Below are positions 1 to 64,000 of a DNA stretch of 64,000 nt, piece by piece; positions within the stretch are counted from its first letter, which is position 1, and each line of letters starts with the position of its first letter. Under the pieces are notes generated by a model. That model saw only the letters and a list, made by a program, of their open reading frames with translations. It was not told where the DNA came from and ran no database searches. The stretch lies in sequence record NC_025447.1, one strand, 5' to 3'. The position numbers and the translations under genes were made by a program.

Positions 1-1
1 T

Positions 2-337
2 AACTTCAACTGCGGTGATTTTGAAACAACATTATTACTTCATGAGGGTTATCCAGAAGGTGATGTATTAGCTGAGTACAATCCAAAAACTAAAATTCTC
101 AAAAGAGGAATCCAGTTCACTATTAATAACAAAGATGATGTTCAAGCAGCACTGATGCAACTGAGTACAAGTGAACCTATCACTATTAGTGTAGAAGAGT
201 TATGGGGAATTATTTCAGTACTCAATGAGTGCTACAAAGTAAAATCATTGCGTAAACACAGCATTATATTACATACCAATATGGCAAATATAAAATGTAA
301 GCACATTCAAGAAATGGTGGTTCCAGATGGACTTTAA
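2..337 (+). CDS. hypothetical protein, 5' end outside the window
   Basis: frame is open from nt 2 to the stop at 337; track ORF 155..337 is its 3' part. Confidence 0.7.
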   Translation, partial: NFNCGDFETTLLLHEGYPEGDVLAEYNPKTKILKRGIQFTINNKDDVQAALMQLSTSEPITISVEELWGIISVLNECYKVKSLRKHSIILHTNMANIKCKHIQEMVVPDGL

Positions 338-911
338 AGAAATTGAAAGTAAATTAAAGTACTTCAAAGATATCAAACTTCTTTGGAAAAAGTATAAAGT
401 TGATTACAATTTCAGTGATGATGAGACAATAAAATACATTGAGATTAATATCAAAATCAAGTTCAAGAATAATAATTATGGTGAAGTAACCTTAAATCAT
501 ACTGGTATATCACTCAAGGACTATGATGGTACAACACTCGCATATTTTGACTTCACACCAGAACCAGGTGAAACACTACTTAGTGAGATAAATTCCTATG
601 ACATGGAAGTGTTCGGCGGGAATCCGTTACTGTTCCGACTTTCTGAAGAGTGGAGTGAAGAGTACTACACTTACAAAGATGGTGTAGTACTTGACATTCA
701 TGGAGAAGTTGTGAATGACTTGGAAGAACGTTTGTTCCAAGAATTGTGTGTTTCAAATACTTCATATGCATACAATCATATCCTTGACATGTTTGATTTA
801 TATAGTAAAATAGATGCTGAAATGAAGGCACATGGTATTCATTACCTTACAATTAACGACTATGCTCAACTCGAAACCGCTGTGAAAGCATTGACTAAAG
901 TACTGAAATAG
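327..911 (+). CDS. hypothetical protein (EE..FQ paralog family)
   Basis: 194 aa ORF, coupled to upstream gene; LEERLFQELCV motif. Confidence 0.75.
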   Translation: MDFKEIESKLKYFKDIKLLWKKYKVDYNFSDDETIKYIEINIKIKFKNNNYGEVTLNHTGISLKDYDGTTLAYFDFTPEPGETLLSEINSYDMEVFGGNPLLFRLSEEWSEEYYTYKDGVVLDIHGEVVNDLEERLFQELCVSNTSYAYNHILDMFDLYSKIDAEMKAHGIHYLTINDYAQLETAVKALTKVLK

Positions 912-920
912 GAATGAAAT

Positions 921-1334
921 ATGAAACTGTATCATGCGAGTACTGTAAAAATTGATAACTTTTATATCCCGTATGGTGGTCTTCATATGGGAGGTAAACA
1001 CAGTGCTTTGGAAGCTGCATTACGCAAGCTGAGAAGCCCACTGAACGTAGTAGACGCATGTACAGTATACTTGCATACCTTAGAAGTTGATGTTGATAAC
1101 GTGCTTCTGTGTGAAGATTTAGGCAGTGATGATGAGTGGCGTTCACTTATTGAGAATTGCACTGCTCAAGGTTATGATGCTGTTCAGTACAAAAATGATT
1201 ACGAGCCAGACAATGTTCCTAGCTTTATGATTTGGGATGCATCTAAAGTTCGCATCATTGAAGTTGATGCTATGCATATGGATGAAGCTGAAATGATTAT
1301 CGAAGATTTTCTTGATGAATATGAAGGTGTATAA
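921..1334 (+). CDS. putative ADP-ribosyltransferase-fold protein (ART-PolyVal-like)
   Basis: KLYHAS...GLHMG N-terminus and GYDAVQYKNDYE..SFMIWD C-terminal pattern. Confidence 0.4.
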   Translation: MKLYHASTVKIDNFYIPYGGLHMGGKHSALEAALRKLRSPLNVVDACTVYLHTLEVDVDNVLLCEDLGSDDEWRSLIENCTAQGYDAVQYKNDYEPDNVPSFMIWDASKVRIIEVDAMHMDEAEMIIEDFLDEYEGV

Positions 1335-1870
1335 TGTCTGACCCGATGGTAGCACTGGCACGTACAAAATTACTATTAAAGATTGGTGAGATTTTTACGG
1401 TTCTTCTGTCCAATAATATTGATATCACTGAGCTAGATATTAAGCAACCGTGGGAAGTGACTATGTTCTCGGCGTTCCACCGATTGTCATATAAAGGTGA
1501 AAGTGTTCTTGATTTTAACCCTAAAGCAAAATTCATAGATTATGCTGCGTTGTACAGAGAGTTGCACCGAAATATTTATTCCGGTTGTATAACCAATAAC
1601 TTCAAAGAAATTAAAGTTCAAACTGCATCACATGAGTTCAATGATTTACTTTATCCAGAATTTAATCTAACGGAAGAATTACTCTTTCAGTACTCGTTAA
1701 TTCTCACAAATCTCGAAACGCTAGAGTACTACAAAGAGTTAGTAGATATTTTTATGAATACACGACTTTCAAAAGATATTGTGATATTCTGGTATACAGA
1801 GCATGTTACGGAGGAATTGCTTACTGAATTTCTTCTAAATATGACAGCTATAAAGGAGAAGTTATGTTAG
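1334..1870 (+). CDS. hypothetical protein (EE..FQ family)
   Basis: 178 aa; LTEELLFQYSL. Confidence 0.75.
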   Translation: MSDPMVALARTKLLLKIGEIFTVLLSNNIDITELDIKQPWEVTMFSAFHRLSYKGESVLDFNPKAKFIDYAALYRELHRNIYSGCITNNFKEIKVQTASHEFNDLLYPEFNLTEELLFQYSLILTNLETLEYYKELVDIFMNTRLSKDIVIFWYTEHVTEELLTEFLLNMTAIKEKLC

Positions 1871-2337
1871 ATATTTTAGGAAACATCGATACTGCAAATT
1901 ATTTTATCCAGGACGCACTGTTCAATACAGTTCAACAAGGATTAGAAGTTCGTCATAACGTTTACCAAGGTGATGGTTATTTCGTTGATATTGTTGAGGC
2001 ACGAAAGAATACGTTTAATGTTAACATTACAACACTGGGTAGACAGAACATTGCACGAATTTTAGTAAGTAAAGATGAAATTGTATTGAGATACAGTGCT
2101 AAGTTTATGTTGACTTATAAGAAAAAAACTGATATGTTCAGTACTAATTTATTTGATGAACCATTTGACCTTGAAGATATTGAAGCTACTTTCTTTACTC
2201 AAAGTACTATGGTAAAATACACTGATGTTCAATTTTCTGCTGATGTAATGTCAGAAACATTACAAATGATCAAGGTATTATTTTATGCATTTGAGCAATT
2301 TAGAGAAGAAAGAAACAAGGTTAACAACCACAGATGA
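1864..2337 (+). CDS. hypothetical protein (EE..FQ family)
   Basis: 157 aa; IEATFFTQSTM. Confidence 0.7.
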   Translation: MLDILGNIDTANYFIQDALFNTVQQGLEVRHNVYQGDGYFVDIVEARKNTFNVNITTLGRQNIARILVSKDEIVLRYSAKFMLTYKKKTDMFSTNLFDEPFDLEDIEATFFTQSTMVKYTDVQFSADVMSETLQMIKVLFYAFEQFREERNKVNNHR

Positions 2338-2698
2338 ACTAATAGAGGCGATCACTAAGGAGTCAAAATACCACAAAGGGATTCGTCTATATTTTATAGA
2401 TATTGGTTCAATGGAAGGCATATACATTTATGGTTCACAATCTTTATCTTATGATGTAATGCCAAAAAAACATGTAAAAATCTTTTTAGGTTCAAATAAA
2501 AAAACTTTCTTGACAATTAATGATAAAAACGTTATTATGAATTCGTTGGGTCATGATAAGGTGGAAATTGATCTAAACACGCTTGAGGATATTGATTTTT
2601 TTCAATACGAGTGTTTAGGTGTTGACTTACATGGCATTAGTAGCGATAAGATAAAATCATTAATCAAATATTTCGAAGGTGTTCATAAATGTATCTAA
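2285..2698 (+). CDS. hypothetical protein (EE..FQ family), start uncertain
   Basis: 137 aa; LEDIDFFQYECL. Confidence 0.6.
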   Translation: MHLSNLEKKETRLTTTDELIEAITKESKYHKGIRLYFIDIGSMEGIYIYGSQSLSYDVMPKKHVKIFLGSNKKTFLTINDKNVIMNSLGHDKVEIDLNTLEDIDFFQYECLGVDLHGISSDKIKSLIKYFEGVHKCI

Positions 2699-3702: not shown

Positions 3703-3704
3703 GT

Positions 3705-7984: not shown

Positions 7985-8506
7985 ATGTCGAAGAAGGATG
8001 CTTCGAAAAAACATTCAGTACATTTCAGTACTGGAAAAGATAACTGGACAACTCCCAAAGATTTCTTTGAAGATTTGGATGAGTTATGGGGATTTACACT
8101 TGATGCTGCTTGTGTAGATGAGACTGCATTGTGTGATAATTTTTTCACTCCAGAAGATGATTCACTATCACAGGATTGGGGAAATAATATAGTTTGGTTG
8201 AATCCACCATACAGTGACTTGAAAACTTGGTTATCTAAAGCAGTAGATGCATATAATAACGGGGCAACTGTAGTTATTCTTGTACCCTCAAGAACCGACA
8301 CAATTGCTTTTCAGGATTATGCTGCTAAAATATGTGATTGTATTTGTTTTATTAAGGGAAGATTACGATTTGGTATACCAGAAGAACCCGATAAGAAAAC
8401 AGATTCAGCACCATTTCCTTCGTGTCTGATAGTACTGGATAAGTACTTAACCACTGCTAAAATCAATTATCTTAAATCTCTTGGGTTGGTGATGAAGAAT
8501 TTATGA
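7985..8506 (+). CDS. phage DNA N6-adenine methyltransferase (T1/lambdoid Dam-like)
   Basis: W.TP..FF..LD..WGFTLDAA, WLNPPYS catalytic motif IV, LVPSRTDT, FIKGRLRF. Confidence 0.88.
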   Translation: MSKKDASKKHSVHFSTGKDNWTTPKDFFEDLDELWGFTLDAACVDETALCDNFFTPEDDSLSQDWGNNIVWLNPPYSDLKTWLSKAVDAYNNGATVVILVPSRTDTIAFQDYAAKICDCICFIKGRLRFGIPEEPDKKTDSAPFPSCLIVLDKYLTTAKINYLKSLGLVMKNL

Positions 8507-29856: not shown

Positions 29857-29884
29857 AGGAATCCAGTACTGGATTCCTCTTTTT
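29857..29884 (+). terminator. intrinsic terminator formed by a 22 bp perfect palindrome
   Basis: AGGAATCCAGTACTGGATTCCT followed by cttttt. Confidence 0.7.
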
Positions 29885-29964
29885 ATTGCTGTATATCAAT
29901 TTTCATCGATCAAAAAATGATCTATATAAGCTAAATACCCAAGGAATCATTGTTACTAGGGTAG

Positions 29965-32357: not shown

Positions 32358-32386
32358 TTGACTTAAGTGTTTAAGTACTATATTAT
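32358..32386 (+). promoter_or_regulatory. sigma70-like promoter
   Basis: TTGACT-N17-TATTAT. Confidence 0.5.
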
Positions 32387-40596: not shown

Positions 40597-40624
40597 AGTA
40601 CTGCCATCGTGTGCAGTACTTTTT
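40597..40624 (+). terminator. probable terminator
   Basis: AGTACTGC-catcgtgt-GCAGTACT-tttt. Confidence 0.55.
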
Positions 40625-40638
40625 AATTGGAGATTACT

Positions 40639-45950: not shown

Positions 45951-48647
45951 ATGTCAAAGAAAATATATGGTGGCTTGGATGTCACACATAATGTGACAGT
46001 TAATGGTAAAAGAACAATACAAGGTATCAATGATCAAGTATTTGATGCTAATGGCAATATGGAGCTAGATACTTATTCAAGAGATGAAGTACTAGATATC
46101 GTCAGTATGATGCCAATTTCCCATTATGGGTCACAAAACTATCTTCCTGCTGGTGTATCTGGTGATTTCAATGGTGCATCTGAAAACCAGTCCCAACGTA
46201 GAAATAAAATTTTATTAGAAAACGATGGTACACTCGTATTATTACGTAGTGGTACAAACGGTAGTGTTGAGGGATTATATTATTCATATTTGGCTAACGC
46301 ATTATCAGTTGATGACATGAGCCGTACAATTAACACCAGTCGTCAATACAAGCCTGGTTTTTTCGGTTCAAATCGCGTCGCAATTGGCTTATACAATACT
46401 GATCCAAATATTTTACTCGGTAGATATGTAGACACTTCTAACAGTACTAATGGATTGTTTATTTCTATTACTAATGGTACATTAGATGATAAATTACATA
46501 CTGGTTTTTTTGTAAATCAAGCAGATATTTGCCCTGAAGGTGGTATAGAATTTGCAATGATGGCTGAAGATGGTTCAATCTATGTCTTTAGTGTTCTTAA
46601 TGAAAATAACCAACTACAGTTAGTTGTTGTCCGAGTTGTATATAATATTAGCAATGGAACATATACGGCAACTCGTATTACAGGATGGACTACAAAAACA
46701 TTCTATAATACAACTTATTCTGCACAGAATAACATGGTTATTACTAATCAAGTAACTTCAACTAATATAGCAGATAAGCCTTATGTGTATGTACCACAAA
46801 ACCTACGTGGTATTGGGATTTATATGACATCCATTGATTTGTATGTTGCACAGCAACCAGGAACACAGAACTTTCGTTTTAGAATGAATGGTGATGCATG
46901 GTTTACAATGGCGACATATAATGCCCGACCACAACATAGCTACAGCTTTGCATTTAATATGAGTACTAAACAATGCACCCTAGACGCTGGGAATGACATA
47001 GGTTCATATCAAGCACCATTGGTTATAACCAATACTGGTTCTGCATTAGTGCCTACAGGTAACGTTTTAAATAATGATCCATTATATAATCATGCTAATG
47101 CAAGAAACATTTATAGTTCTTATTTTTACTTAAGTTCAGGTGAAGCTTTTTGTACTGTGTGTCCAAACTTAGCAGAACCATTACTTATGCAAAAAGCAAA
47201 GTTTCCTATACAAATTGTTTATAGTATGATTAACGTTCGTGCAGTACAATCAACTGATTTTAAAGGTGGAGTTGTTAGACCATCCTTTGGTTCAGCAGTT
47301 GGTTCATTTATTAATGGTGTGGAGTTGTTACCAGATAATAGTACTAAACAATATTCACGTGCGTCTGGTAGTGGTGGGTTTAGACCATCATATGCAGTTC
47401 ATAAAAGTACTCCTAATTTTACATTTAAATCATTATCTTTAGGAACCATACAAGGTTATGAACCTACAACTGAACGTGGTTATGTAGATGATAATGCCAA
47501 TAATAGAATTTTCATTAGTAGTATTTCAGGTTCAACTGTAACAACTAATGGCGGTATTTTTATGGTTGGTCAACGTTATTCACAATCATTTTCATATGAT
47601 AAAAACTTAAATGGTACTGGTGTTATTAGTGTTACACAATCAGTTCTAGATAACTTTAGAAATACAGAATATGCTAAAGTTCTAAGTGACTGGAACTTAT
47701 CTTCACAAGCTTATCGTGATATGACATTATTTGTTCCACAACAAACTGACATTCCGGCTTTTGTTATGTTGAGTACTATAACAAATGACTATAAAAACTA
47801 TATTAGAATTGCTGAAGTTAACGTTAATACTAGAGTTGGAAATATAACATCTATTACCTTTAAGCGTTTAGTACTAGAAAATACATATGGTGAAAACTTT
47901 ACACCTAATGGTAATGGTTCGATTGCATCTTCTTCTGTTGGGTTAACAATTTATGATGGTGGTTCATTCTACTTCATTGGTGGTTCTGACCCATTAACAC
48001 ATCCAACAATAGGAAATACAGCAACTCATCAATTTAGAGCATATGTAACTAAATCAACTGCACAATTTACAAGTTTTGTTATTACTGGTTCTCATGCCAG
48101 TTATGAACAAGGAAGACAACCCACTGCGTTGCCTGGTATTGGATTTGGTATTTTTGATCCACTGGATTATACAAATAAAATGTCATTTCAAAAATATGGA
48201 ACAACGATAGCCGACTATAATAACTGGACTCCACAAGGTAGCCCAATTAACGTAGTATCACAAGACGTTGCTCAAGGGTTTATTGTTTATTTTACAGAGG
48301 AAACACCAGTTATACTATCAGGTAAGTCTTTTACACTACCAGTTTCAAATATTGATTTGAGAACTATAAAATCTAATCCAGCAAATACAACATTTTATGT
48401 ATATGTTAAATTAGAACAAGGGTTGGCAAACTACTACATAACTACTGATGTTATTTCCGAAACAGGAACAACTGCATATAATATTTTTTGGATAGGTACT
48501 ATTCAAACTAACGCAATTCAAATCGAAACTATTAATATACAAAAACGTTCACGTTTAGATATATTTGGTGCTTCACTTGAATCAGCAGGTTCATCGTTCC
48601 CAGTTAGCTACGGTCTACCATCACAAACAGGAACCATAAACTGGTAA
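45951..48647 (+). CDS. large virion/tail-associated protein (paralog 1)
   Basis: 898 aa, G/S/T/N-rich, late promoter, colinear with 49263-51992. Confidence 0.65.
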   Translation: MSKKIYGGLDVTHNVTVNGKRTIQGINDQVFDANGNMELDTYSRDEVLDIVSMMPISHYGSQNYLPAGVSGDFNGASENQSQRRNKILLENDGTLVLLRSGTNGSVEGLYYSYLANALSVDDMSRTINTSRQYKPGFFGSNRVAIGLYNTDPNILLGRYVDTSNSTNGLFISITNGTLDDKLHTGFFVNQADICPEGGIEFAMMAEDGSIYVFSVLNENNQLQLVVVRVVYNISNGTYTATRITGWTTKTFYNTTYSAQNNMVITNQVTSTNIADKPYVYVPQNLRGIGIYMTSIDLYVAQQPGTQNFRFRMNGDAWFTMATYNARPQHSYSFAFNMSTKQCTLDAGNDIGSYQAPLVITNTGSALVPTGNVLNNDPLYNHANARNIYSSYFYLSSGEAFCTVCPNLAEPLLMQKAKFPIQIVYSMINVRAVQSTDFKGGVVRPSFGSAVGSFINGVELLPDNSTKQYSRASGSGGFRPSYAVHKSTPNFTFKSLSLGTIQGYEPTTERGYVDDNANNRIFISSISGSTVTTNGGIFMVGQRYSQSFSYDKNLNGTGVISVTQSVLDNFRNTEYAKVLSDWNLSSQAYRDMTLFVPQQTDIPAFVMLSTITNDYKNYIRIAEVNVNTRVGNITSITFKRLVLENTYGENFTPNGNGSIASSSVGLTIYDGGSFYFIGGSDPLTHPTIGNTATHQFRAYVTKSTAQFTSFVITGSHASYEQGRQPTALPGIGFGIFDPLDYTNKMSFQKYGTTIADYNNWTPQGSPINVVSQDVAQGFIVYFTEETPVILSGKSFTLPVSNIDLRTIKSNPANTTFYVYVKLEQGLANYYITTDVISETGTTAYNIFWIGTIQTNAIQIETINIQKRSRLDIFGASLESAGSSFPVSYGLPSQTGTINW

Positions 48648-48658
48648 AGGATTACATA

Positions 48659-49246
48659 ATGGCATTTAAAATAAGAGCAGACCTTAAGGCAATGCAACAA
48701 GTTACAGTACAGGGTAAAAGTACTGGACTTGGTGTATTAGGTAATAATATGACTTATTACCCAACAAATTCAAATGGGGAATGTACATTCCCCTCTATTA
48801 CCAAAGATGAAGTTAACTTTATTGTCAATGGATTACCACTTACACAATACGGAGAATTGTATGATGACGCTAGTCTAAATATTACTTCATCAGGCTATAG
48901 TCTTACATTTAATAGACAGATACCATCATTTATTGGTGGTTATCTTTATAAATTTCCAGCAGTTTCTATTTTTGCTTCAACTGTTTCATCTGGAACACAA
49001 ACACAATATGTATATGCAACGTTAGTTCTCGGTGAACCAATTTATAAAATATCACCAACACAAATACAAGAATCTGAAATTATAATGTTTATTGGAACAC
49101 TGACCGTTGGTACAAGTGGTATTACAAATATAAACATTAATAAAGTATCCAGATTTAGTACATATAGACCTAGTGTTACACAAAAAGGTTCTTCATTCCC
49201 AGTCAGTACTGGAAAACCATCAGAAACTGGTACAATTGGTTGGTAA
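48659..49246 (+). CDS. short virion/tail-associated protein (paralog 2)
   Basis: 195 aa sharing N- and C-terminal modules with its neighbours. Confidence 0.65.
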   Translation: MAFKIRADLKAMQQVTVQGKSTGLGVLGNNMTYYPTNSNGECTFPSITKDEVNFIVNGLPLTQYGELYDDASLNITSSGYSLTFNRQIPSFIGGYLYKFPAVSIFASTVSSGTQTQYVYATLVLGEPIYKISPTQIQESEIIMFIGTLTVGTSGITNININKVSRFSTYRPSVTQKGSSFPVSTGKPSETGTIGW

Positions 49247-49262
49247 ATTAAGGAAAAGAAAG

Positions 49263-51992
49263 ATGTCATCAAAACGAATTATAGGAAGTGCCGAGATCCT
49301 TGGGAACTTGGCAATTGGACAAAGGTACGCTATGCGTACTTTTAATGGAACCTCACCGAATGCCAATACTGGAATTGTTCAATATCCAATATATAAGCGT
49401 TCAGAAGTTCAAAGTATTTTAGATATGTTGCCTATATCACGTGTAGGAGAAATGGATTACTTGCCATTAAACGTAAGTGGGTCGTATGAAGGTGCTACAC
49501 CTATGTCAAGTGACCAAGTAGTTCAGCCAACAATTATTGAAGATGATGGAACCGCCGTTGTTCTGCGTAGCGGAACCAATGGTAGTACTAAAGGTTTTTA
49601 TTATTCATTTATACGAGAAATCAGAAATATAACCATGATTTCACAAGAAAGTGTTATTTCAACCAATTCAATGTATAAACCTTCAATTATGAGTAGTACA
49701 GAGAATATTAAGTATTTTATTGGCTCTAATGGTTATGAAATGCTTGGATGTTTAAGTACAGAAGATAATTATATTTTTACTATAACTAATGGTACATTCA
49801 ACGAAGTATCACATATTCATGCTAAAGTACCAAGTACTTCTTTTGGTAATGATATGCCTATATATACTCATATTGTTGGAACAAAAGTATATATTTGGTG
49901 TAAAGATAAAAGTGTTTCTAATTTAGGATTAGCACTTTCAATTTATACAGTAGAGCTAAGTGATGTGAAAGCAAGCTCAATGGCATCATTAACAAAAGTT
50001 ACTGGATTATCAGGGCAAACTGTTCGAAATACAAGTTATTCTGCATCTAATAACATAAGAGTGTTTGATAGATTATATAGTGTTGGTACTAGCTCGGATT
50101 CATTATTCGAAGTTACATCACCAGTCTCACGTGTAGAATTTTCGGATTATACAGACTTTAATATACAAGCAAACGTTAGTACTGATTTATCCAAAATACG
50201 TGTAACTTTATACCCAACCCATAGAATGGTTACACCTTTATATATTTCAACAGTGTATGGTACTGGTATCAGTTTTGTTTATAATATAAACTCAAAATCT
50301 ATGTCACTAGATGGTTCTGCTCGTGCTCCTGCTACAGTTTCATATGATAATGGATTTCAAGTTTCTAACCCATTTGAAATCAATATGGTCAACTTTACTG
50401 GGACAACTGCTGCTGGTGTATTAGGAAACGCAGGTGGTTTATGTCAAACCAAAGATGGTTTAGTATTTGCATCTAAATTTAGATGGAGTTCAACTGAATT
50501 TTATGGTCTACAACGATATAAGGTTAGTGGTACACCGTTTGATTCATGGGTTGCTAGTACTAGATCCGCAAGTAACGTTATAAATGCAAACGTTTTACCA
50601 GTTTTTGGTAGTGCTGTTGGTGCAAACCTATTAGGTGTACGTTTCATCGATAATAGAAAAATATTATTAGCATGTTCTGGTACGTATGATGATGTAACAT
50701 ATAATTATAATAATACTGTTTTTTCTGAAATAGGCTCACAACCAACATATCAATATAACTCAGTTCAAAATAATACTACATTAAATGGTTTTGCACCACA
50801 ATCTAATCGTAAACAAATAGGTGATGATTTTACATACACTGCTATGATTTCTCTTGTTGATACCGATGGTAGTGTTAGATGTTATGGAACATCATTCATT
50901 GAAGGTGTATATAAAACAAGTGGTGGATTATTAAACCCAGATACTTTAGAATTTGATGAAACATATACAATAGAACCAACGGTATTAGAATCATTAAAAC
51001 AAGATATTTTTGCTAATCTAGGAAACTCTGGCATTGTTGGTACACTATCTGGACAAATTGTATTATATTATGTACCTGATAATACTTTTTCTAAATCCAT
51101 TGCAGTAGTTTCAGCATATAATCTTAACAATAACCAAGGTTATGCAATCTATGCCGAAGTTGATGTTGTATTATCTGGAACTAACATAACTTCAGCTACA
51201 TTGGTAAGTACTAGATATGAGACACTTAGTTCTGTTACCGGAATTATTACTGAAGCATATATGAAACGTTGTACTGGTCTAACAGTTGCTAAATATTCAG
51301 GATTTGGTTACATTGGTGTTGATGCAGTTCATCAATTTTCACAACCAGGTAATGCACAATTTAAGATGATGATAGCTAAAACAGTAGATGGTGTCATAAC
51401 ATCAAATCGTTTTTTATCATCTAGTTACATCCAACTCGGTGCAGCATATCAACATGGTGTTATTCCTGGTGTTGGTTTTGGATATTACAATTTTCAAGAT
51501 TCTGACTATCAAACCAAATCTGTATTCAGCGTTTTTGGTACAACATCTGCTGAAATGGATGGTTTAATTAGCGGAAATGGTAGCGTTAAAGAAAAGATTG
51601 TGGTAGTATCACAAGACGTTGCACAAGGATTCTCAGTGTACTTTACACGTGAAGTCCCGGTGTTTTTAGGTGGAATTTTCGACAGACTACCTATACAAAG
51701 TGTAGATTTAAGTACTGTAAAAAGTAATCCAGCTAATACTACGTTCTATTTGTATATACAAATGAACAGGAATACTAAGAAAGCTTCATATGTTATTAGT
51801 ACTGAAACAATTGATGAATCTTTAACTAGCACTTACATTGGTAAGATAGTTACTGGAACTTCAGGAATAACTTCAATTGATACAGAAAAAGTAACTCGTT
51901 TTTTGACATATCGTCCAAGTACAACGAAACGTGGTTCAGCGATACCTGCCAGTACTGGTGTACCATCAGGTCCAGGTACACGTTGGAAATAA
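49263..51992 (+). CDS. large virion/tail-associated protein (paralog 3)
   Basis: 909 aa from ATG 49263 after AAGGA; DDGTAVVLRSGTNGS, VVSQDVAQGF shared with paralog 1. Confidence 0.65.
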   Translation: MSSKRIIGSAEILGNLAIGQRYAMRTFNGTSPNANTGIVQYPIYKRSEVQSILDMLPISRVGEMDYLPLNVSGSYEGATPMSSDQVVQPTIIEDDGTAVVLRSGTNGSTKGFYYSFIREIRNITMISQESVISTNSMYKPSIMSSTENIKYFIGSNGYEMLGCLSTEDNYIFTITNGTFNEVSHIHAKVPSTSFGNDMPIYTHIVGTKVYIWCKDKSVSNLGLALSIYTVELSDVKASSMASLTKVTGLSGQTVRNTSYSASNNIRVFDRLYSVGTSSDSLFEVTSPVSRVEFSDYTDFNIQANVSTDLSKIRVTLYPTHRMVTPLYISTVYGTGISFVYNINSKSMSLDGSARAPATVSYDNGFQVSNPFEINMVNFTGTTAAGVLGNAGGLCQTKDGLVFASKFRWSSTEFYGLQRYKVSGTPFDSWVASTRSASNVINANVLPVFGSAVGANLLGVRFIDNRKILLACSGTYDDVTYNYNNTVFSEIGSQPTYQYNSVQNNTTLNGFAPQSNRKQIGDDFTYTAMISLVDTDGSVRCYGTSFIEGVYKTSGGLLNPDTLEFDETYTIEPTVLESLKQDIFANLGNSGIVGTLSGQIVLYYVPDNTFSKSIAVVSAYNLNNNQGYAIYAEVDVVLSGTNITSATLVSTRYETLSSVTGIITEAYMKRCTGLTVAKYSGFGYIGVDAVHQFSQPGNAQFKMMIAKTVDGVITSNRFLSSSYIQLGAAYQHGVIPGVGFGYYNFQDSDYQTKSVFSVFGTTSAEMDGLISGNGSVKEKIVVVSQDVAQGFSVYFTREVPVFLGGIFDRLPIQSVDLSTVKSNPANTTFYLYIQMNRNTKKASYVISTETIDESLTSTYIGKIVTGTSGITSIDTEKVTRFLTYRPSTTKRGSAIPASTGVPSGPGTRWK

Positions 51993-55370: not shown

Positions 55371-55998
55371 ATGGCACAACAAATTTTCACAGATATCCAC
55401 ACTACCGGAGTTATTAAATTTCAAAATAATTTTTCTGGTGCTACTGGTGTAGACATTAAAAATGATGGTTTTAACATTGTCAGTACTCGGATCTATTGAT
55501 GGTGAAGATAGTTCTCTTAGTGATTCTGTGATTGCATCATTCGGAACTAATAAAAACAGTTCTTTTATTATATCTGGATGGACTGGAATGACTGATTCTG
55601 AAAATAATGTTAAGATAAAAGCTAAAGCTACTAACGAGAATCATGAAACAGAATGGGTAACATTATATGATAGTGCAAGTAATAAGTTATATAATGTATT
55701 AAGTTCTAATAATATTTTAATTAATCCACTGTCGGGCAATTCTGTTTTTAATATTAATTTATCTGATAGAAATACTACTATTTCGATTGGTGCGGCTCCT
55801 ACTGAAGTTTATTCAATTACCATCCTATTAACACAACAAACAGGTTCAAACCTAGTTAATTGGGGTTCTAATGTTAAATGGTCATATAACAGACCAGTTG
55901 TTCTTTCTTATGAAATTGGTGAAAAAGATATTATTTCATTAGAAACATATGATAAAGGAGTTACATGGTACGGTGCATTAATTAGAGCAGGAGTATGA
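55371..55998 (+). CDS. tail-fibre-like protein split by a +1 frameshift near 55453-55497
   Basis: N-terminal MAQQIFTDIHTTG resembles the tail paralog N-termini; C-terminal W..NVKWS..P.LS..DII.L.T.D.G.TWYG module. Confidence 0.55.
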
Positions 55999-55999
55999 T

Positions 56000-58789
56000 A
56001 TGTTAAACAATAATATTGATAATATTGTACAACTTCTTTATGGGCATCACAAATTTATTGAAAGAAATACTGGTGATACAATAGACCCAACAGTACAACA
56101 TTATGTGGTGAACAATCAGGGTGTTTTGGCGAACAACCGTCATTTTATTAACTATTCTGCAATGGAAGGTCAACCAAACGGTGACGGAACAACAGAAGGT
56201 CAAAGTCTATTAATTTTAGGATACATTTATGCGTATCTGGCAACAAATGATCCAATGTTTTTAGATAAGGCAAAGTGGTATTGGGACGCATATCATCAGT
56301 ACTTTTATGCTGGACGTGAATTACCAGATCCACCTACACCACTACAATGTAACTGGATAGTTAATGCCAAAGAACCTATATTGGCTAACTGGCCTTTAGC
56401 TGATGATGGCTGGCCCACACATGGTGGTTTCAAGGGAGTAGAATTTACATTTACTAATGGTCAATGTAAAATACCACATGGTGCACCATATTATGGTCAG
56501 TTCTTGGATAAAGTGACATTTGCATTCAAAGGTGCGTTAGCATGGAACCAAATAAATGCTTCAGTAAAAGCATTATTACCAGATGGTAGTGTTGATTGGG
56601 ATACACCAGGTGAACAATATGATGTTGACTGGATTATCGATTTCATGGGTAGAAAAATCGACTGGGATGGTAATATTTTAGCAGAAGGTTTTGACGAATC
56701 TGAAAAAGGAACTGTTCAATTAAAGAATACAACAATTAATGGTGTATATAAATTAAATTTTGCAAATCGTCAACCAGTAGAATATGGTGGTGTGATAATT
56801 CAACGAAATGAAATGCAACACAACCGCCCTCTTCATGTTCCAATTGATTTGGAATTTGCTGATAACGCATCAGATGCAGAATTATGGTTTAGTGATGCTT
56901 CTTATTTGTTATATAAAATAACAAAAGAAAGAAAACATTATTTGGGTTGGAAATGTTCACTACTAACGTGTTATGCTTATGGTGATATTGACTCCAGAGA
57001 TAAATTTTTCAGACAAAGTACAATTGTAACCACACCATTCACTGATGGTATTTCCTATGAATATTTTTATCCTAGTGATGCTATTGCTAAGTTTGGTAGA
57101 AATTCTCTAGGATATATTACTATCAGGCAAGACCAAAGTGCACAAAGTACTATGGAACAACAAGCTATTTGGTTCAGGGTCAATGCTGATTCTAAATTAC
57201 TTGTAGACTATGGTGGTGTATGTGATGATGGTAAGCCGTTATCATTTAAACCAGTACTGGAATTGTCAAAAACAAAAAATGACCATGATGTTGTTCGTTA
57301 TCGTTGTGGCTTACCGGAAAGTAAAGACCAAAATATCACACATTCATTAACACCTTTAAGTGCATTTGTTAGAGAAAAGAAAGCAGATGGTTTCCCTTAT
57401 ATAATTGCTGATAGTAGAATTGTTGTTCCTTATGGTGCAGCTACGTCCGAAATGATATATAGTACTGATATATTAGTTACACGCCGCGATACCATTAATC
57501 AGTTAGTTTGTGGTGAAGATGATGGTGCTGTTATTGGATTTTGGCTATTAGCAACAAATAAGTCTGAAGTTAAATCTTTTACCTATCGTTCATATGAAGA
57601 TGATTACAATATAAGAATTGTAGATGATAATGGTTGGAGATGGTGGTGGATGATTCCTGCAACACACGGGGAATGGACTACAATCACACTAAGTTCCGAT
57701 ACATTACGTTTATCTGGGTATCAGCCAAATCATCCAAGTTCTGACCCAAGACCAGATGCACCAGTTTATAGTGAACTAGAAGATATTACTATTTTACCTG
57801 ATACAACCCCAGTAGATGGTGTTGCTGCAATAATTGATTGGTATTGTATTAATGACATTCCAGAATTATACACGGATGCTGACGGTGATGACTATACTAT
57901 GACATTTTCAATAACAATTGCAGGTGAATCACCATATACTGCACAGTTAGGGGATTGTGTAATCAAGGATTATTTGTTAAACTCATTGCATTACACACCA
58001 GGAACAATACCATTTTCTAACATCACTGACCCGTATGCGAACCAGTATTCAGGATGGCGTGGTTTACCGTATCCAGGTTATCAATATCCTGTGATATATT
58101 GTTTTAAAGACCAGCCAGTAGATAACACACGCTTAGGAAACATGTTAAGCTTTATGAAAGATTCCCAAACATGGTTTACTCAACAATTCGGTACTGTTGG
58201 TCCGTGTGCACAAGCATATGTTTGGAACCGCTGGGATAACTTAAAATATGGTGAACCAGATACATTTACTATGCTACATTGGGGTGATCAAGCATGGAGT
58301 GGGTATGAACCACGTGCGTTCTTTGGGGCTGCCAGAGCATGGCAAGAACTCGCAGAGAGAGGAATTGAACCACCAGCAGATCTTGTTGAATTTTGTGAGA
58401 ATTGGATTCACTTTTTAATTCAATTTCAAAAAGATAATGATGGTCGTTCACCAACAATCTTCAATAAAGATGGCACAGTTGAAGGTCCAGATTGGGACTT
58501 TACAGGTCATATGTGTGGGTTGTGGTTAGCTGGGGCTTGTGCTGCTGGATTGGCTGGATGTAAAATAGAAGGTCTAACAACACTCGCTGATAACTTAGTT
58601 CTCGAACTTCAAAAGAATTATGTTATTGTAAATCCAGGTTCACCAATGAATGGTTCATGGAGTCCAGCAGTTAGAGAAGGTACTGATAATGGTATGTTTT
58701 TTGGTTTCTGGGCAGGTGAGATTATGCGTGGATTGGGATTATACTCAATGTACCGCTTAAACACACCAAATCGTTTCCGTGATTTATAA
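56000..58789 (+). CDS. large virion-type protein with GH8-like glycoside hydrolase motifs
   Basis: TTEGQS...LATND and NASDAELW match GH8 motifs recalled from BcsZ. Confidence 0.55.
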   Translation: MLNNNIDNIVQLLYGHHKFIERNTGDTIDPTVQHYVVNNQGVLANNRHFINYSAMEGQPNGDGTTEGQSLLILGYIYAYLATNDPMFLDKAKWYWDAYHQYFYAGRELPDPPTPLQCNWIVNAKEPILANWPLADDGWPTHGGFKGVEFTFTNGQCKIPHGAPYYGQFLDKVTFAFKGALAWNQINASVKALLPDGSVDWDTPGEQYDVDWIIDFMGRKIDWDGNILAEGFDESEKGTVQLKNTTINGVYKLNFANRQPVEYGGVIIQRNEMQHNRPLHVPIDLEFADNASDAELWFSDASYLLYKITKERKHYLGWKCSLLTCYAYGDIDSRDKFFRQSTIVTTPFTDGISYEYFYPSDAIAKFGRNSLGYITIRQDQSAQSTMEQQAIWFRVNADSKLLVDYGGVCDDGKPLSFKPVLELSKTKNDHDVVRYRCGLPESKDQNITHSLTPLSAFVREKKADGFPYIIADSRIVVPYGAATSEMIYSTDILVTRRDTINQLVCGEDDGAVIGFWLLATNKSEVKSFTYRSYEDDYNIRIVDDNGWRWWWMIPATHGEWTTITLSSDTLRLSGYQPNHPSSDPRPDAPVYSELEDITILPDTTPVDGVAAIIDWYCINDIPELYTDADGDDYTMTFSITIAGESPYTAQLGDCVIKDYLLNSLHYTPGTIPFSNITDPYANQYSGWRGLPYPGYQYPVIYCFKDQPVDNTRLGNMLSFMKDSQTWFTQQFGTVGPCAQAYVWNRWDNLKYGEPDTFTMLHWGDQAWSGYEPRAFFGAARAWQELAERGIEPPADLVEFCENWIHFLIQFQKDNDGRSPTIFNKDGTVEGPDWDFTGHMCGLWLAGACAAGLAGCKIEGLTTLADNLVLELQKNYVIVNPGSPMNGSWSPAVREGTDNGMFFGFWAGEIMRGLGLYSMYRLNTPNRFRDL

Positions 58790-61438: not shown

Positions 61439-61466
61439 GGGACATAACACATCCTAGTGATATAAT
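61439..61466 (+). promoter_or_regulatory. promoter upstream of ncRNA copy B
   Basis: GGGACA-N16-TATAAT with TG extension. Confidence 0.7.
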
Positions 61467-61496
61467 GTATATTGTAAAATGACAACGGACATTGAA

Positions 61497-62042
61497 AAAT
61501 GGATAATGAGAACCTACTTCTCTTGAAAATGTAAAGGATAGATGAGCTTTACCGTTGTAGCGAACAGCAAAAGAAACCTGTTAGAGTACTGGCATTCAAA
61601 CAAACACGATGTAAGACCACGAATCACGGCGACACGGCTGTATAAAGAACTCCGATAAGCATACAGAGAGTTCCTAGATAGATGTATAAGGTTCGCACCT
61701 TACCAGATTTGCTAAGGGAGTTTAAGAATAGCGGACGCAATTTTACAAGAAAGTTGCGTCCAAAATTTGAGAACAGGTACTACTTTGATCGAATAGAGTT
61801 AGTACTGAGTGCTGTTGATGAAAAGACCAGCGACCGTTGCATATGACTGCGATAGAGAGAAACCGAGCAACCCGCTTTCGCTCTCTAAATTTTGGTACAA
61901 GAAAGATCCGTCCAAAATTTGAGAAATTCGCAATTCGATAATATCCGATGCCATCATCGTCAAGAGAGACTTAATTGTCTCTTTTTTATTACCTTCATTC
62001 CCCTGCGGGGGGATGTAATAGTCCTCAACAAATCCCGTCAAG
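61497..62042 (+). ncRNA. candidate large structured non-coding RNA, copy B
   Basis: colinear homology to 6830-7312; dedicated promoter; covarying stems; cUGCGg loop. Confidence 0.75.
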
Positions 62043-62127
62043 TTTTTAAAGTACATTATCATTTTCAGAAGGAACTAGTTTACGAAGTAAACGCAGTGAC
62101 TTCTTGAGTTACGAGAGAACGAAGTGA

Positions 62128-62556: not shown

Positions 62557-62588
62557 ATAATAAGAGAATAACTCTAAGGAGAGATATT

Positions 62589-63029
62589 ATGGAAGATATT
62601 AATGATTTACGACACGTAATGGACTTTATCGGAAGTACTGAAGAAGATAATTCATATGATGAAGTACTATTAACTTTTATTGAAAATAGTTTGTTTTTAA
62701 GTTCTGCTGCACATAACTGGCACTTACAATGTCATTTTTATACAAAGCATTTACAATTAGATGAACTATATAAAGAATTACCAGAATATGTAGACGCATT
62801 TGTTGAAGGTATCATGAATAATCGTGGTGCTTTGCAAGTTGGGACTGGTAATAGTTATCGTTTTACACCAATTGAAGATTGTGTACCAATTCTTGAAGAA
62901 TATGTTGAGCAATGCAGAGCAATTCATGATATGCTTGAAGAATCGGGTGATTACGGCAGTGTAAACACATTAGAAGATATTATGAGTTTTGTTGAAGGAA
63001 CACTTTACAAACTTAAAGTTTTACAATAA
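62589..63029 (+). CDS. ferritin/Dps-like four-helix protein
   Basis: AHNWHL, HLQLDELYKEL.EYVDAFVE, C-terminal YKLKVLQ; AAGGAG RBS. Confidence 0.7.
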   Translation: MEDINDLRHVMDFIGSTEEDNSYDEVLLTFIENSLFLSSAAHNWHLQCHFYTKHLQLDELYKELPEYVDAFVEGIMNNRGALQVGTGNSYRFTPIEDCVPILEEYVEQCRAIHDMLEESGDYGSVNTLEDIMSFVEGTLYKLKVLQ

Positions 63030-63036
63030 ACTATAT

Positions 63037-63066
63037 GGAGAGTCGCTATGACTCTCCTTTTCTTTT
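63037..63066 (+). terminator. intrinsic terminator
   Basis: GGAGAGTC-gctat-GACTCTCC-ttttctttt. Confidence 0.8.
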
Positions 63067-63077
63067 GGAGAAATAAT

Positions 63078-63710
63078 ATGAAATCGCATGAGTTAGCAAA
63101 ATTACTACTATCTCAACCAAATCTAGAAATTTATCATTATGATGCAGAGAGTGACTTGCATTATCAGAATTTTGATAATAAATTAATGGTTACACCATCT
63201 GGTATTTTCACAACGGTAAAACCTACATCAGTTTCTGAAAATGTACTTACACCATACGAAACCCCCCTCTTGGGTCATGTGCAAATTTTCTTTAAGGATG
63301 GTACTATTACTCCAAAATTGGAGGGTTCACATATTCAAACTGTTCTTAGCTTAGAATATGGGTTGGTATTTAACATTCCTTATGAAAAGCCAATTGTTTT
63401 ATTAGGTAAAAATCAATCAACACAATTCTCTAATCAACATACTGTTTGTTATACATCTGATGATATTGATTTCATTTCAGTACTGACAGAATATGATCCT
63501 AATACTTGGCACGAAACATGGAAAACTATGTCATATGATGAAGCAATTGAATGTGGTAAAAATTTAGCCAAAATGTTATTTTCACCGAAAAAAGAACTTT
63601 CACAAGAACAAAATGAATCATTTTCTAAAGATTTTCCTGATTCTGAATTCAATGTTAAAGTATCAACTACCAAAATTGGTGAATTTCTAAATGAAAATCA
63701 AAAAGATTAA
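63078..63710 (+). CDS. hypothetical protein
   Basis: GGAG RBS; MKSHELAKLLLSQP. Confidence 0.7.
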   Translation: MKSHELAKLLLSQPNLEIYHYDAESDLHYQNFDNKLMVTPSGIFTTVKPTSVSENVLTPYETPLLGHVQIFFKDGTITPKLEGSHIQTVLSLEYGLVFNIPYEKPIVLLGKNQSTQFSNQHTVCYTSDDIDFISVLTEYDPNTWHETWKTMSYDEAIECGKNLAKMLFSPKKELSQEQNESFSKDFPDSEFNVKVSTTKIGEFLNENQKD

Positions 63711-64000
63711 ATTCCACCAGCATTGTTCTATACATGTCTGTGATGATTGTGGTATACAAATGAGTGATATTTATACAGTTTCCTGTAAAGGTTTCAAATT
63801 CACTCATGGTGAACCTGCTTACTGTTATGGTACAGAAGAAGGTGATATCGAGATAGTACTGAAAGAATTGTTCCAGTACTTGCAAAGTGTCGGTCATGAT
63901 GTTACAATACCCACATATTATGAAGATGATTATGATGCACATGTAGAAGAAAATACATATTATAATCAATTCGTTTATGGTAATGGTTTTATCACATACC
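63691..64000 (+). CDS. hypothetical protein, runs off the window end
   Basis: open frame MKIKKIKFHQHCSIHVCDDCG... Confidence 0.55.
   Translation, partial: MKIKKIKFHQHCSIHVCDDCGIQMSDIYTVSCKGFKFTHGEPAYCYGTEEGDIEIVLKELFQYLQSVGHDVTIPTYYEDDYDAHVEENTYYNQFVYGNGFITY

Follow-up and report, generated by a model that had tools for sequence, protein, structure and literature searches.

Hyper-abundant short palindromes are known from cyanobacterial chromosomes, in which HIP1 (GCGATCGC) and alternate palindromes occur in all frames as well as in intergenic DNA. HIP1 sites are conserved beyond background, and hence selected (PMC5861425). Deviant HIP1 copies are biased to changes at the first and last bases, and the orphan methyltransferases associated with HIP1 target its inner core (PMC4390886). 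Here, we describe a comparable hyper-abundance of the hexamer AGTACT in Escherichia phage 121Q and its relatives. We tentatively read AGTACT as a HIP1-like, selected recognition site for a two-fold-symmetric, probably phage-encoded DNA-binding protein, a reading that we hold at somewhat less than even confidence. Part of this reading is that the word, with the graded consensus TTCAGTACTGAA, serves as a ‘signature’ that Rak2-like jumbo phages carry throughout their genomes.

The window analysed here is a 64 kb stretch (nt 186,001–250,000) of the 348.5 kb 121Q genome. AGTACT occurs 184 times in the window (positions 1..64000), or about once per 348 bp, against a mononucleotide expectation of 21.5 and Markov expectations of 17, 31, and 59 at orders 1, 2, and 3. 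It is the commonest hexamer both in the window and in the full genome, which contains 903 copies versus about 100–118 expected (100–350 over all composition and Markov nulls). This 8–9-fold excess reaches 44-fold for copies with the preferred flanks. Escherichia coli host DNA carries 0.17 AGTACT per kb, and 121Q carries ∼2.3–2.6 per kb genome-wide, roughly 15 times more. Thirty other A/T-rich 6-bp palindromes were examined in the window and none shows enrichment; other palindromes there are depleted. A first-pass annotation of this DNA had reported that the motif recurs across the window, as these counts bear out, and its hand count of 34 copies in nt 1–10,000 was reproduced exactly. It had also placed 17 copies in a 6 kb block of tail genes. 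The 17 copies are present (45951..51992, + strand), but the tail label is wrong: gp499–gp501 are annotated as hypothetical proteins. The annotated tail-fibre and tail genes, gp508–gp509 (55477..58789, + strand), contain only five copies, about 1.4–1.5 per kb and at the low end for the window.

The enrichment is not a by-product of coding. AGT, ACT, GTA, and TAC are all fairly common codons in 121Q, as would be expected if AGTACT merely followed from codon usage, dipeptide content, or a bias toward the tetramer GTAC. However, a synonymous-codon shuffle that preserves every protein and the codon usage of each gene yields 41.4 ± 5.4 copies in coding sequence versus 173 observed (z = 24), and a codon-order shuffle yields 22.7 (z = 30). 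The first of these had been named beforehand as a refuting test, together with a GTAC bias; GTAC outside AGTACT occurs 238 times where about 194 would be expected, which shows that the abundance of AGTACT produces the GTAC excess and not the reverse. The word falls in all three codon phases (86 sites in phase 0, 34 in phase 1, and 50 in phase 2, with eight non-coding), including the phases previously quoted for positions 661 (GAG TAC TAC) and 686 (GTA GTA CTT), and we agree that no single amino-acid pair explains it. Moreover, coding and non-coding DNA have equal AGTACT densities outside the terminal repeat. Together, these results leave the coding and tetramer explanations with a negligible probability. 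The pressure is instead visible in codon choice: 87 of 131 Ser-Thr pairs (66%) are spelled AGT-ACT versus 14 expected, and the dipeptides Ser-Thr, Val-Leu, and Gln-Tyr are about 1.5-fold more frequent than the reversed pairs.

Examination of the flanking bases shows a symmetric, graded site. C occupies position -1 in 44% of sites and G occupies position +6 in 47%, and these preferences are reverse-complement symmetric despite strong strand skew and a genome with almost all genes on one strand. The exact core with both flanks (CAGTACTG, 37 copies in the window) has an observed/expected ratio of 44, the core with other flanks 7.4, sequences with one core mismatch 1.4–2.0, and those with two mismatches 1.0. 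The two halves contribute independently, as CAGTACTG is observed 37 times versus 36.5 expected from its constituent 7-mers. Single-base deviants are weakly biased to the outer positions (NGTACT and AGTACN, 1.5–2.2-fold) over the inner positions (0.6–2.0-fold). The full 12-mer TTCAGTACTGAA occurs twice in the window, at 40174 and 45542. The occurrence in all phases and in non-coding DNA, the symmetric flanks, and the Ser-Thr spelling establish that the pressure acts on double-stranded DNA.

AGTACT sites are under selection, as they are conserved beyond background, intergenic DNA included, and are evenly spaced. Between genomes of 83% identity, 58–73% of AGTACT sites are conserved versus 42% for other hexamers, and intergenic sites in the terminal repeat are conserved at 94% versus 73% (p = 2e-5). 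AGTACT copies are spaced more regularly than expected by chance (CV 0.79, p = 0.0005 in the window; range 0.79–0.89), and 22 genes lack the word versus 36 expected. New sites arise by the change that costs the protein least (GTT>GTA, Ser>Thr, or Phe>Tyr), and the radical mirror change hardly occurs (20 versus 1). Sites are created most often by T>A transversions. Terminal branches show 17 gains and eight losses, and private sites number 55 on the 121Q/PBECO4 side versus 27 on the ph0011 side; AGTACT density is therefore still changing. This surplus of gains is also what favours a neutral mutational or repair bias, in which a very-short-patch-like drive would create functionless sites, and a model based on repair has been put forward for HIP1. 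We nonetheless disfavour such a drive, which the first-pass annotation had raised as one of six candidate mechanisms without preferring any, and consider it highly unlikely: no single-base neighbour of AGTACT is depleted, conservation extends to intergenic DNA, the spacing is under-dispersed rather than Poisson, the predominance of T>A is set by protein cost rather than mismatch class, and two adjacent regions of 121Q escape entirely.

Comparison with related phages, another check proposed earlier, indicates that the trait belongs to a clade. Asterius-, Mimas-, and Eneladusvirus phages and their relatives share the enrichment (5.5–15-fold), which reaches 12-fold in PBECO4, 9-fold in ph0011, 15-fold in CBB, 13-fold in XbC2, 7-fold in BF, 5.5-fold in Munch, 7–13-fold in Yersinia phage fHe-Yen9-04, and 14-fold in a contig of GAP32 length. 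The word persists across genera that have diverged too far for DNA alignment. More distant relatives show no excess (∼1-fold in Atu_ph07 and some 30 contigs with 64–69% capsid identity), and AGTACT is depleted in about 120 unrelated phage contigs versus 5–15-fold enriched in the Rak2-like clade.

The enriched phages infect almost exclusively Enterobacterales, which carry the nucleoid-occlusion factor SlmA, and the phage may exploit or titrate a host protein. SlmA sites are likewise genome-wide palindromes, and the 12-bp SlmA site GTGAGTACTCAC has AGTACT at its centre; the published rule requires G, T, and a purine at positions 1–3, A and G at 4–5, and a pyrimidine at 6 (PMC3020112). However, SlmA-compatible flanks at AGTACT are 2.5-fold depleted (11 versus 27.6 expected on the left, 9 versus 23.0 on the right, and none on both sides), and phage sites prefer a pyrimidine at position 3, where SlmA needs a purine. 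The relaxed full site GTRAGYRCTYAC is absent from the 121Q genome. We reject SlmA as the reader because its required flanks are depleted and no relaxed full site is present. We know of no other host protein with AGTACT specificity, and an explanation through host-protein sites is very unlikely overall. The recorded host of one enriched phage, XbC2, is Xanthomonas; this likewise speaks against a host protein and, only if the host label is right, favours a phage-encoded reader.

AGTACT is most concentrated in the 20 kb direct terminal repeat of 121Q, at about 6.7 per kb versus 2.3 per kb elsewhere; the terminal repeat of CBB is also denser (6.4 versus 4.5 per kb). The 121Q repeat, which lies outside the window, carries very small early genes with strong sigma-70 promoters. 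AGTACT holds fixed registers in these promoters and is also present in terminator stems. AGTACT is present in 33 of the 129 strong promoter matches and occupies a single register in about 24 of these, although the fixed registers may partly reflect duplication of a single promoter cassette. In the window, a consensus match to a sigma-70-like promoter (32358..32386, + strand; genome 218,358) places AGTACT (32374) in the spacer, abutting the -10 element, in the same register as the terminal-repeat family. Sequence context also shows two intergenic hairpins on the + strand. The first (29858..29887) is terminator-like and has a perfectly palindromic stem centred on AGTACT (29865) followed by a T-run, and a terminator of this type has been published for CBB (Torf26). 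The second (40597..40626) forms from a pair of AGTACT copies (40597 and 40615), with arms AGTACTGC and GCAGTACT followed by a T-run. AGTACT is mostly absent from the published CBB promoter set. A role as a plain promoter element is rejected: only about 45 of the 903 genomic sites lie in promoter-like contexts, and 94% of window sites lie inside genes, evenly distributed along gene length.

A second unusual region, also outside the window, bears on how the word is read. One strand of a 7,511-nt block spanning about 19 genes contains no ACT at all (p about 1e-59), and the block is conserved in PBECO4 and TH47, with one new ACT versus 53 ± 7 expected neutrally. Within the block, AGTACA replaces AGTACT one-for-one, at the same density and in all three phases. 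The altered half is still ‘read’, because density, phases, and the C and G flanks all persist. A strand-specific reader of ACT or ACU must exist, given the conserved and complete absence of ACT, and AGUACU might accordingly be a processing, cleavage, or pairing site in transcripts, densest in early mRNAs for turnover and escaped by the ACU-free block. Peak AGTACT density does coincide with the early region, and ACU lies within the words cleaved by the enterobacterial mRNA interferases Kid (UUACU) and ChpBK (ACY) (PMC5408214). The window also encodes a candidate RNase for the ACT-free block, gp480 (36165..37604, + strand), with a predicted PIN_4 nuclease domain fused to a PhoH ATPase, as in PhoH2; mycobacterial PhoH2 prefers sequences beginning AC[A/U]. 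The block further resembles MazF-resistant ACA-less mRNAs, in which a three-base word is wholly missing and confers immunity to an endoribonuclease (PMC5408214), although those are engineered single genes and the 121Q block is a natural viral region with ACU as the missing word. An RNA or single-strand signal is nevertheless quite unlikely to explain AGTACT itself. Its flanks are reverse-complement symmetric on a strand-skewed genome with genes almost all on one strand, its density is equal in coding and non-coding DNA outside the repeat, ACT is not avoided elsewhere in the 121Q genome, and an RNase-target model does not predict AGTACA at full density. A new structured RNA, present in four copies, was found alongside.

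Methylation offers another reading. A phage methyltransferase would recognise AGTACT or its GTAC core, and the methylated site would either be useful or be created and kept by methylation-dependent repair, as proposed for HIP1. Several observations are consistent with this. 121Q encodes two methyltransferases, one small C5 enzyme and one of the Dam family; the latter, gp417 (7985..8506, + strand; PF05869), is a candidate N6-adenine modifying enzyme by domain match and is conserved, together with its flanking genes, in CBB and XbC2. Specificity for the core is close to all-or-none, the mildly enriched deviants spare the GTAC core in the manner of HIP1, and the substitute AGTACA retains GTAC. 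AGTACT is, moreover, a methylated viral site in Mollivirus (PMC7253447). However, neither methyltransferase family tracks the enrichment outside the clade, and the link to methylation raised in the first-pass annotation gains no support. Median AGTACT observed/expected is 0.3 in about 60 unrelated phage contigs with gp417-like enzymes, 64 contigs with gp91-like enzymes contain 99 copies versus 258 expected, and in both searches only jumbo-clade members are enriched. GTAC outside AGTACT shows no enrichment, AGTACA is no substrate for an AGTACT-specific enzyme yet stands at full density with its flank preferences intact, and none of the neighbours expected from deamination is depleted. Pulsed-field gel electrophoresis indicates that 121Q DNA lacks bulky modification, with which plain methylation is compatible (PMC5646251). 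We regard a methylation-linked palindrome as unlikely.

A selected protein-binding site accommodates these observations in the following way. The reader would be a DNA-binding protein and not an enzyme; it would be specific to the clade, probably encoded by the phage, and dimeric, with each subunit contacting one half-site (C-A-G-T). By binding densely and evenly, it may set phage DNA apart from host DNA, either as a mark or by organising it, and it may also act on early promoters. A contiguous 6–8 bp palindrome with a near all-or-none core would be more usual for a restriction-modification enzyme than for a helix-turn-helix regulator, and no fitting DNA-binding domain was found among candidate window proteins scanned against Pfam and PHROGs or in any annotated 121Q gene.

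Several known systems share part of this pattern. Stoperators of cluster A mycobacteriophages (e.g., L5) are short protein-binding sites that occur in numbers at promoters and within transcription units. They number about 30, are 13 bp long, asymmetric, and orientation-dependent, and are bound by a temperate phage's immunity repressor, whereas the roughly 900 AGTACT sites are symmetric and belong to virulent phages. Chi, KOPS, and DNA-uptake sequences are similarly dense and fairly even, with weak per-copy selection that overrides codon choice; they are asymmetric and strand-polar, whereas AGTACT and its flanks are palindromic and lack orientation. (121Q shows a separate excess of Chi.) Restriction-site avoidance in phages concerns the same class of word, a ScaI-type 6-bp palindrome, but with the opposite sign. 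The nucleoid-occlusion sites of SlmA (E. coli) and Noc (Bacillus subtilis) are also genome-wide palindromes within genes, the SlmA site shares its central six bases with AGTACT (PMC3020112), and both classes are models for a signal that ‘DNA of this kind is here’. However, nucleoid-occlusion sites number 24–52 per chromosome versus 903 AGTACT per 348 kb, and they are said to avoid promoters, where AGTACT is enriched.

The proposed likeness to HIP1 holds for abundance in all frames and in non-coding DNA, for conservation beyond background, and, weakly, for the outer-base bias of deviants. HIP1 hosts and 121Q both encode orphan methyltransferases, although for AGTACT no cognate enzyme could be linked. 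The systems differ in that AGTACT is an A/T-rich hexamer in a virus and HIP1 a G/C-rich octamer in a cellular chromosome, in the size of the excess (8–9-fold, or 44-fold with flanks, versus 15–300-fold), and in the local structure of AGTACT density, with its terminal repeat, deserts, and substituted word. HIP1 itself shows a periodicity of 10–90 kb. AGTACT is thus HIP-like in behaviour and not a member of HIP1, because the word differs from GCGATCGC and its bearer is an enterobacterial phage rather than a cyanobacterium.

Escherichia phage 121Q is a virulent jumbo myovirus of 348,532 bp that belongs to the genus Asteriusvirus and is one of the 'Rak2-like' phages (PMC5259590). Its sequence, NC_025447, also carries a second accession, KM507819, and was assembled here from eight fetched pieces of the record. 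The window matches nt 186,001–250,000 of 121Q at 100% identity, has a G+C content of 33%, is 94% coding, and carries nearly all of its genes on the + strand. Within it, the palindrome AGTACT occurs 184 times, against 21.5 expected from base composition and 17, 31, and 59 expected under Markov models of order 1, 2, and 3, respectively. AGTACT is the top-ranked hexamer in both the window and the entire 121Q genome, where 903 copies are observed against about 100–118 expected. Our recounts reproduce the ∼34 sites that the first-pass annotation reported in the first 10 kb (34) and the ∼17 that it reported in a 6 kb block (17, at 45,951–51,992). Its description of this block as tail genes does not hold, as the block encodes three large hypothetical proteins, gp499–gp501; the annotated tail genes are at 55477–58789. 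The codon phases that it quoted are correct. Sites in the window fall into the phases AGT-ACT (86), nAG-TAC-Tnn (34), and nnA-GTA-CTn (50), with a further eight in non-coding DNA.

The enrichment persists when protein sequence is held constant. We permuted synonymous codons within each gene, leaving proteins and per-gene codon usage unchanged, a conservative null because per-gene codon usage is itself inflated by AGTACT. This shuffle yields 41.4 ± 5.4 copies against 173 observed in complete coding sequences (z = 24), and a codon-order shuffle yields 22.7 (z = 30). Among 30 other A/T-rich palindromic hexamers, none exceeds expectation in the window. Bias toward the GTAC tetramer is likewise rejected as the cause: 184 of the 422 GTAC tetramers in the window lie inside AGTACT, and the remaining 238 compare with 194 expected. 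Since GTAC outside the hexamer matches expectation, the tetramer excess is a consequence of AGTACT. The shuffles and tetramer counts thus rule out a codon or dipeptide artefact as well as GTAC bias, and we attach practically no credence to a coding origin. Codon choice itself bends to the word. The AGT-ACT spelling is used for 87 of 131 Ser-Thr dipeptides, where codon usage in other contexts predicts 14.4 (p = 4e-51), and the same choice is seen in Val-Leu after an A-ending codon and in Lys/Gln/Glu-Tyr-Tnn triplets. Moreover, these dipeptides are ∼1.5-fold more frequent than their reversed forms (ST 131/TS 85, VL 156/LV 98, QY 61/YQ 30), which indicates that the pressure extends into protein sequence. 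The serine codon inflated by the word, AGT, accounts for 34% of Ser codons; a phage tRNA-Ser with anticodon ACT (genome 75,464–75,555, confirmed with ARAGORN) reads AGT.

The anatomy of the motif indicates how it is recognised. Genome-wide, C precedes AGTACT at 44% of sites (background 16%) and G follows at 47% (background 18%), with weak outer preferences for T/T and A/A that give the extended consensus TTCAGTACTGAA. The flank preferences are mirror-symmetric despite the strong compositional skew of the coding strand, and the left and right preferences are mutually independent. Word and flanks are reverse-complement symmetric, not strand-polar in the manner of an architecture word. The observed/expected ratio (O/E) is 44 for the exact core with C and G flanks, 7.4 for the exact core with other flanks, 1.4–2.0 with one core mismatch, and 1.0 with two. 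No single-base neighbour of AGTACT is depleted genome-wide, including both products of cytosine deamination. This symmetry, the sharpness of the word, and the lack of depleted neighbours argue for two-fold-symmetric recognition of duplex DNA and not for an RNA signal, a peptide signal, or a deamination-repair cycle. A neutral repair drive would be expected to leave a depleted neighbour behind, and we rate it the least probable of the live alternatives. A very-short-patch-type drive is not supported for the same reason.

Comparison of related genomes indicates that individual sites are maintained. In a three-way 50 kb alignment of 121Q with PBECO4 (95% identity) and ph0011 (83%), AGTACT is conserved between 121Q and PBECO4 at 92% of sites, compared with 80% for other hexamers, and between 121Q and ph0011 at 58–73%, compared with 42%. 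There is also turnover: 85 sites are common to all three phages, 55 occur only on the 121Q/PBECO4 side and 27 only in ph0011, and terminal branches show 17 gains against eight losses. Where 121Q has a site that ph0011 lacks, ph0011 reads AGTTCT in 20 of 65 cases. The creating transversion, AGTTCT>AGTACT, leaves Val unchanged in phase 2 (GTT>GTA) and puts Thr in place of Ser in phase 0 and Tyr in place of Phe in phase 1; its mirror image, a radical amino-acid replacement, is seen once. Selection thus acts on AGTACT as DNA, within the limits of protein tolerance. Conservation in the terminal repeat is free of any codon effect because the sites compared are intergenic: 64 of 68 (94%) are kept between 121Q and its close relative G17, against 73% of other intergenic hexamers (p = 2e-5). 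One AGTACT in the capsid gene is common to nine of 10 genomes across genera, and the capsid gene of 121Q is without the word.

AGTACT is found throughout the 121Q genome at a background density of 11–40 per 10 kb. Outside the terminal repeat region its density is the same in coding and non-coding DNA (2.3 and 2.6 sites per kb), and sites spread evenly along the length of genes. Inter-site distances are more regular than random, with coefficients of variation of 0.79 in the window (p = 0.0005), 0.81 in the terminal repeat, and 0.89 in the right arm. Likewise, only 22 of 114 genes in the window are without a site, against 36 expected. We found no periodic or helical-phase spacing; short distances are near Poisson apart from a small peak at 20–22 bp, which stems from promoter cassettes.

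The density rises to 65 per 10 kb at 131–156 kb of the genome. The two ends of the G17 record (1–20,668 and 350,150–370,817) match each other fully (100%) over 20,668 bp and constitute a direct terminal repeat. Its equivalent in 121Q, matched at genome 135,477–155,638 outside the window, is present in the record as a single, unannotated copy. This repeat holds 135 sites, a density of 6.7 per kb (O/E 21) where the rest of the genome has 2.34 (p = 2e-23); between its tiny genes the density reaches ∼12 per kb. The terminal repeat annotated in the record of Pectobacterium phage CBB is also enriched (6.4 versus 4.5 sites per kb). The 121Q repeat consists of tiny early genes separated by ∼90 bp intergenic gaps, with a family of near-identical strong promoters. 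The sigma-70 −35 and −10 hexamers, like the Chi octamer, GATC, GGCC, and CCWGG, were searched as consensus words. The repeat is dense in strong sigma-70-type promoter matches, and AGTACT lies inside 33 of 129 such matches on the + strand. In ∼24 of these it takes one register, with the word in the spacer and its trailing G serving as the G of the extended −10; in others it is fused to one or other end of the −35. As a general explanation, a promoter element fails: few sites qualify, and the published CBB promoters are mostly without the word, so the link to promoters does not hold everywhere. Within the window, non-coding copies of AGTACT occupy a promoter-like spacer at 32358–32386 and form the stems of terminator-like hairpins at 29858–29887 and 40597–40626; a terminator of this kind has been published for CBB. 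A second promoter family, at genome ∼98.7–112.7 kb and 144.9–153.8 kb, carries a GGGTTGACTTCGGTCAGCCC-type G/C hairpin followed by a T-run, a terminator that also supplies the next promoter with its −35 and spacer.

Two regions of the genome, both outside the window, depart from this distribution. Beside the terminal repeat, 4.1 kb occupied by 17 tiny genes that overlap one another (155,502–159,569) contain no AGTACT (2.4 expected by shuffle), few GTAC, and no GTAC-type excess, and the same holds for G17. This is what DNA without motif pressure looks like, and the stretch may be recently acquired or fast-turnover DNA. The second region, a 7,511 bp block of ∼19 hypothetical genes (gp346–gp364; 161,804–169,313), is entirely free of ACT on the + strand, against a genome mean of 19.2 per kb and an expected longest gap of ∼460 bp (p about 1e-59). 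The frequency of AGT, the reverse complement, is normal in the block, and no other trinucleotide shows a comparable run. The homologous 7.3 kb of PBECO4 also has zero ACT. In TH47 (84% identical) there is one, where random scatter of the 1,302 observed substitutions predicts 53 ± 7, and the ph0011 locus, with most of its genes replaced, is still ACT-poor (∼3 versus 25 per kb). We saw no word-free block in other genera in the ∼20–45 kb sampled per genome. An internal terminator and a promoter match indicate that the block comprises more than one transcript.

Absolute, strand-specific avoidance of ACT points to a process acting on RNA or single-stranded DNA. The simplest reading of the sequence is that transcripts of the block would escape an ACU-specific endoribonuclease. 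Interferases with ACU-containing targets are known in enterobacteria: Kid cuts at UUACU and ChpBK at ACY (PMC5408214). In the window, gp480 (36165–37604), annotated as 'PhoH-like', joins a PIN_4 nuclease (residues 4–156) to a PhoH ATPase (residues 269–473), the layout of the PhoH2 RNase-helicases, and is a candidate RNase here; mycobacterial PhoH2 prefers AC[A/U]-initiated sequences. AGTACT might then itself be read on RNA or on single strands, in connection with this avoidance of ACU. We consider this quite unlikely, as the symmetry of the word points to duplex DNA. Inside the block AGTACA substitutes for AGTACT (41 versus 3.6 expected; phases 15/12/12), with the usual C and G flanks and a density equal to that of neighbouring AGTACT, and AGTACC and AGTACG are absent. 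Retention of the closest permitted word at full density with intact flanks is more readily explained by a reader whose affinity for two half-sites is graded than by an exact-match enzyme.

Our sample of related phages comprised regions of named phages and 80 capsid-gene loci drawn from IMG/VR. In it, the enrichment is confined to one clade: every locus with a major capsid protein at least 85% identical to the 121Q protein has AGTACT as its top palindrome, at an O/E of 3–15. Values are 12 for PBECO4, 9 for ph0011, 15 for CBB, 13 for Xanthomonas phage XbC2, 7 for Serratia BF, 5.5 for Salmonella Munch, 7–13 for Yersinia fHe-Yen9-04, and 14 and 10.6 for contigs of 358,663 and 345,809 bp. A single locus at 72% capsid identity has an O/E of 3.1, and the ratio is ∼1 in ∼30 loci at 64–69% and in Agrobacterium phage Atu_ph07 (59%). 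No substitute palindrome was seen in these unenriched relatives. The same word is thus kept across genera that are otherwise unalignable at the DNA level. A 100 kb sample of E. coli DNA contains 0.17 AGTACT per kb, compared with which phage DNA is 15-fold and the terminal repeat 39-fold denser. Phages are textbook cases of palindrome avoidance, and in small phages with Dam-family or small C5 methyltransferases (∼120 unrelated IMG/VR contigs) AGTACT falls below expectation, which makes the excess in the jumbo clade stand out more. Two other palindromes, GATC (620 versus 1091 expected) and GGCC (105 versus 291), are depleted across the 121Q genome. The + strand of the genome carries 18 copies of the Chi octamer, GCTGGTGG, and the − strand 11 (1.1 expected on each); those in the window are on the + strand at 15881 and 23806 and on the − strand at 7241, 58370, and 63714.

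Pressure and symmetry at the DNA level, conservation of sites, even spacing, persistence across genera, and concentration in a repeat of early promoters together show that AGTACT is a selected site on duplex DNA, recognised by something two-fold symmetric and clade-specific. Several candidate readers were tested. SlmA, the E. coli nucleoid-occlusion factor, binds GTGAGTACTCAC and requires G, T, and a purine at positions 1–3 (PMC3020112). These flanks are 2.5-fold depleted at phage sites, the genome contains no relaxed full site, and SlmA is rejected as the reader. Some other host protein is improbable, only slightly less so than a repair drive. The phage encodes two methyltransferases, gp417 (7985–8506 in the window; Dam family, PF05869), for which no solved relative was found, and gp91, a small enzyme resembling short-TRD C5 methyltransferases. 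AGTACT is depleted in ∼60 unrelated phage contigs with gp417 relatives (median O/E 0.3) and in 64 with gp91 relatives (median 0.2; pooled, 99 versus 258 expected); in both searches an excess appears only in jumbo-clade contigs. These phyletic tests, negative outside the clade, lend no support to gp417 or gp91 as the cause. Atu_ph07 has two adenine methyltransferases, neither of them related to gp417, and pulsed-field electrophoresis of 121Q DNA indicates no bulky modification (PMC5646251). With nothing in its favour, a methylation-linked palindrome of the HIP1 kind is unlikely. No DNA-binding domain was found in ten plus ten window proteins scanned, gp442 included, out of 611 in 121Q, and the annotation of the fEgEco12 homologue of gp442 as a 'transcriptional regulator' has no Pfam or PHROGs support.

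We tentatively favour a putative, probably phage-encoded dimeric DNA-binding protein as the reader. Such a protein would mark or organise phage DNA through AGTACT and would act on early promoters in the terminal repeat. A fuller and more doubtful proposal is that the word is a 'self' mark written in sequence, at 15–40 times host density and read by a phage protein, and that Asteriusvirus transcripts free of ACU are RNase-immune, the mark there being AGTACA. Phage and host DNA would then be discriminated by site density and not by base modification, for protection, compaction, or global control of early transcription.

We found no earlier report of AGTACT enrichment in the literature on AGTACT in phages, on 121Q/PBECO4, or on SlmA sites in phages. 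Across a whole clade, the largest enterobacterial phages do the opposite of avoiding a palindrome, strongly enough to alter codon choice and, through Ser-Thr, Val-Leu, and Gln-Tyr pairs, even amino-acid content. Should the reader prove to be a phage protein, self and host DNA could be discriminated by density without chemical modification, which would bear on how DNA is protected and organised in jumbo phages that lack a nucleus-like shell. AGTACT also provides a cheap sequence signature for spotting clade members in metagenomes. The ACT-free block is an independent lead, as is a structured RNA present in four copies (6764–7316 and 61460–62045 in the window; genome 90,289–90,789 and 326,622–327,153). 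This RNA, predicted to be ∼500 nt with an invariant extended −10 promoter, is kept in CBB, XbC2, BF, Munch, and ph0011, where the surrounding DNA is unalignable. RNAalifold predicts 84 pairs, 40 with compensatory double changes. It matched no Rfam family and is unannotated in all records, with a tiny ORF, gp516, called within one copy.

HIP1, the highly iterated palindrome of cyanobacteria, has been a puzzle for some 30 years, and 121Q offers a second, far smaller and easier experimental system in which to address it: a 350 kb E. coli virus with dozens of sequenced relatives at graded distances and with internal controls, namely a region that lacks the mark and another in which it is substituted. 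The likeness to HIP1 proposed in the first-pass annotation is borne out by over-representation, occurrence in all frames, selection, and deviants at the outer bases (PMC5861425, PMC4390886). Unlike HIP1, the 121Q palindrome is a different word in a viral genome, is linked to no cognate methyltransferase, and has a strong local density structure.
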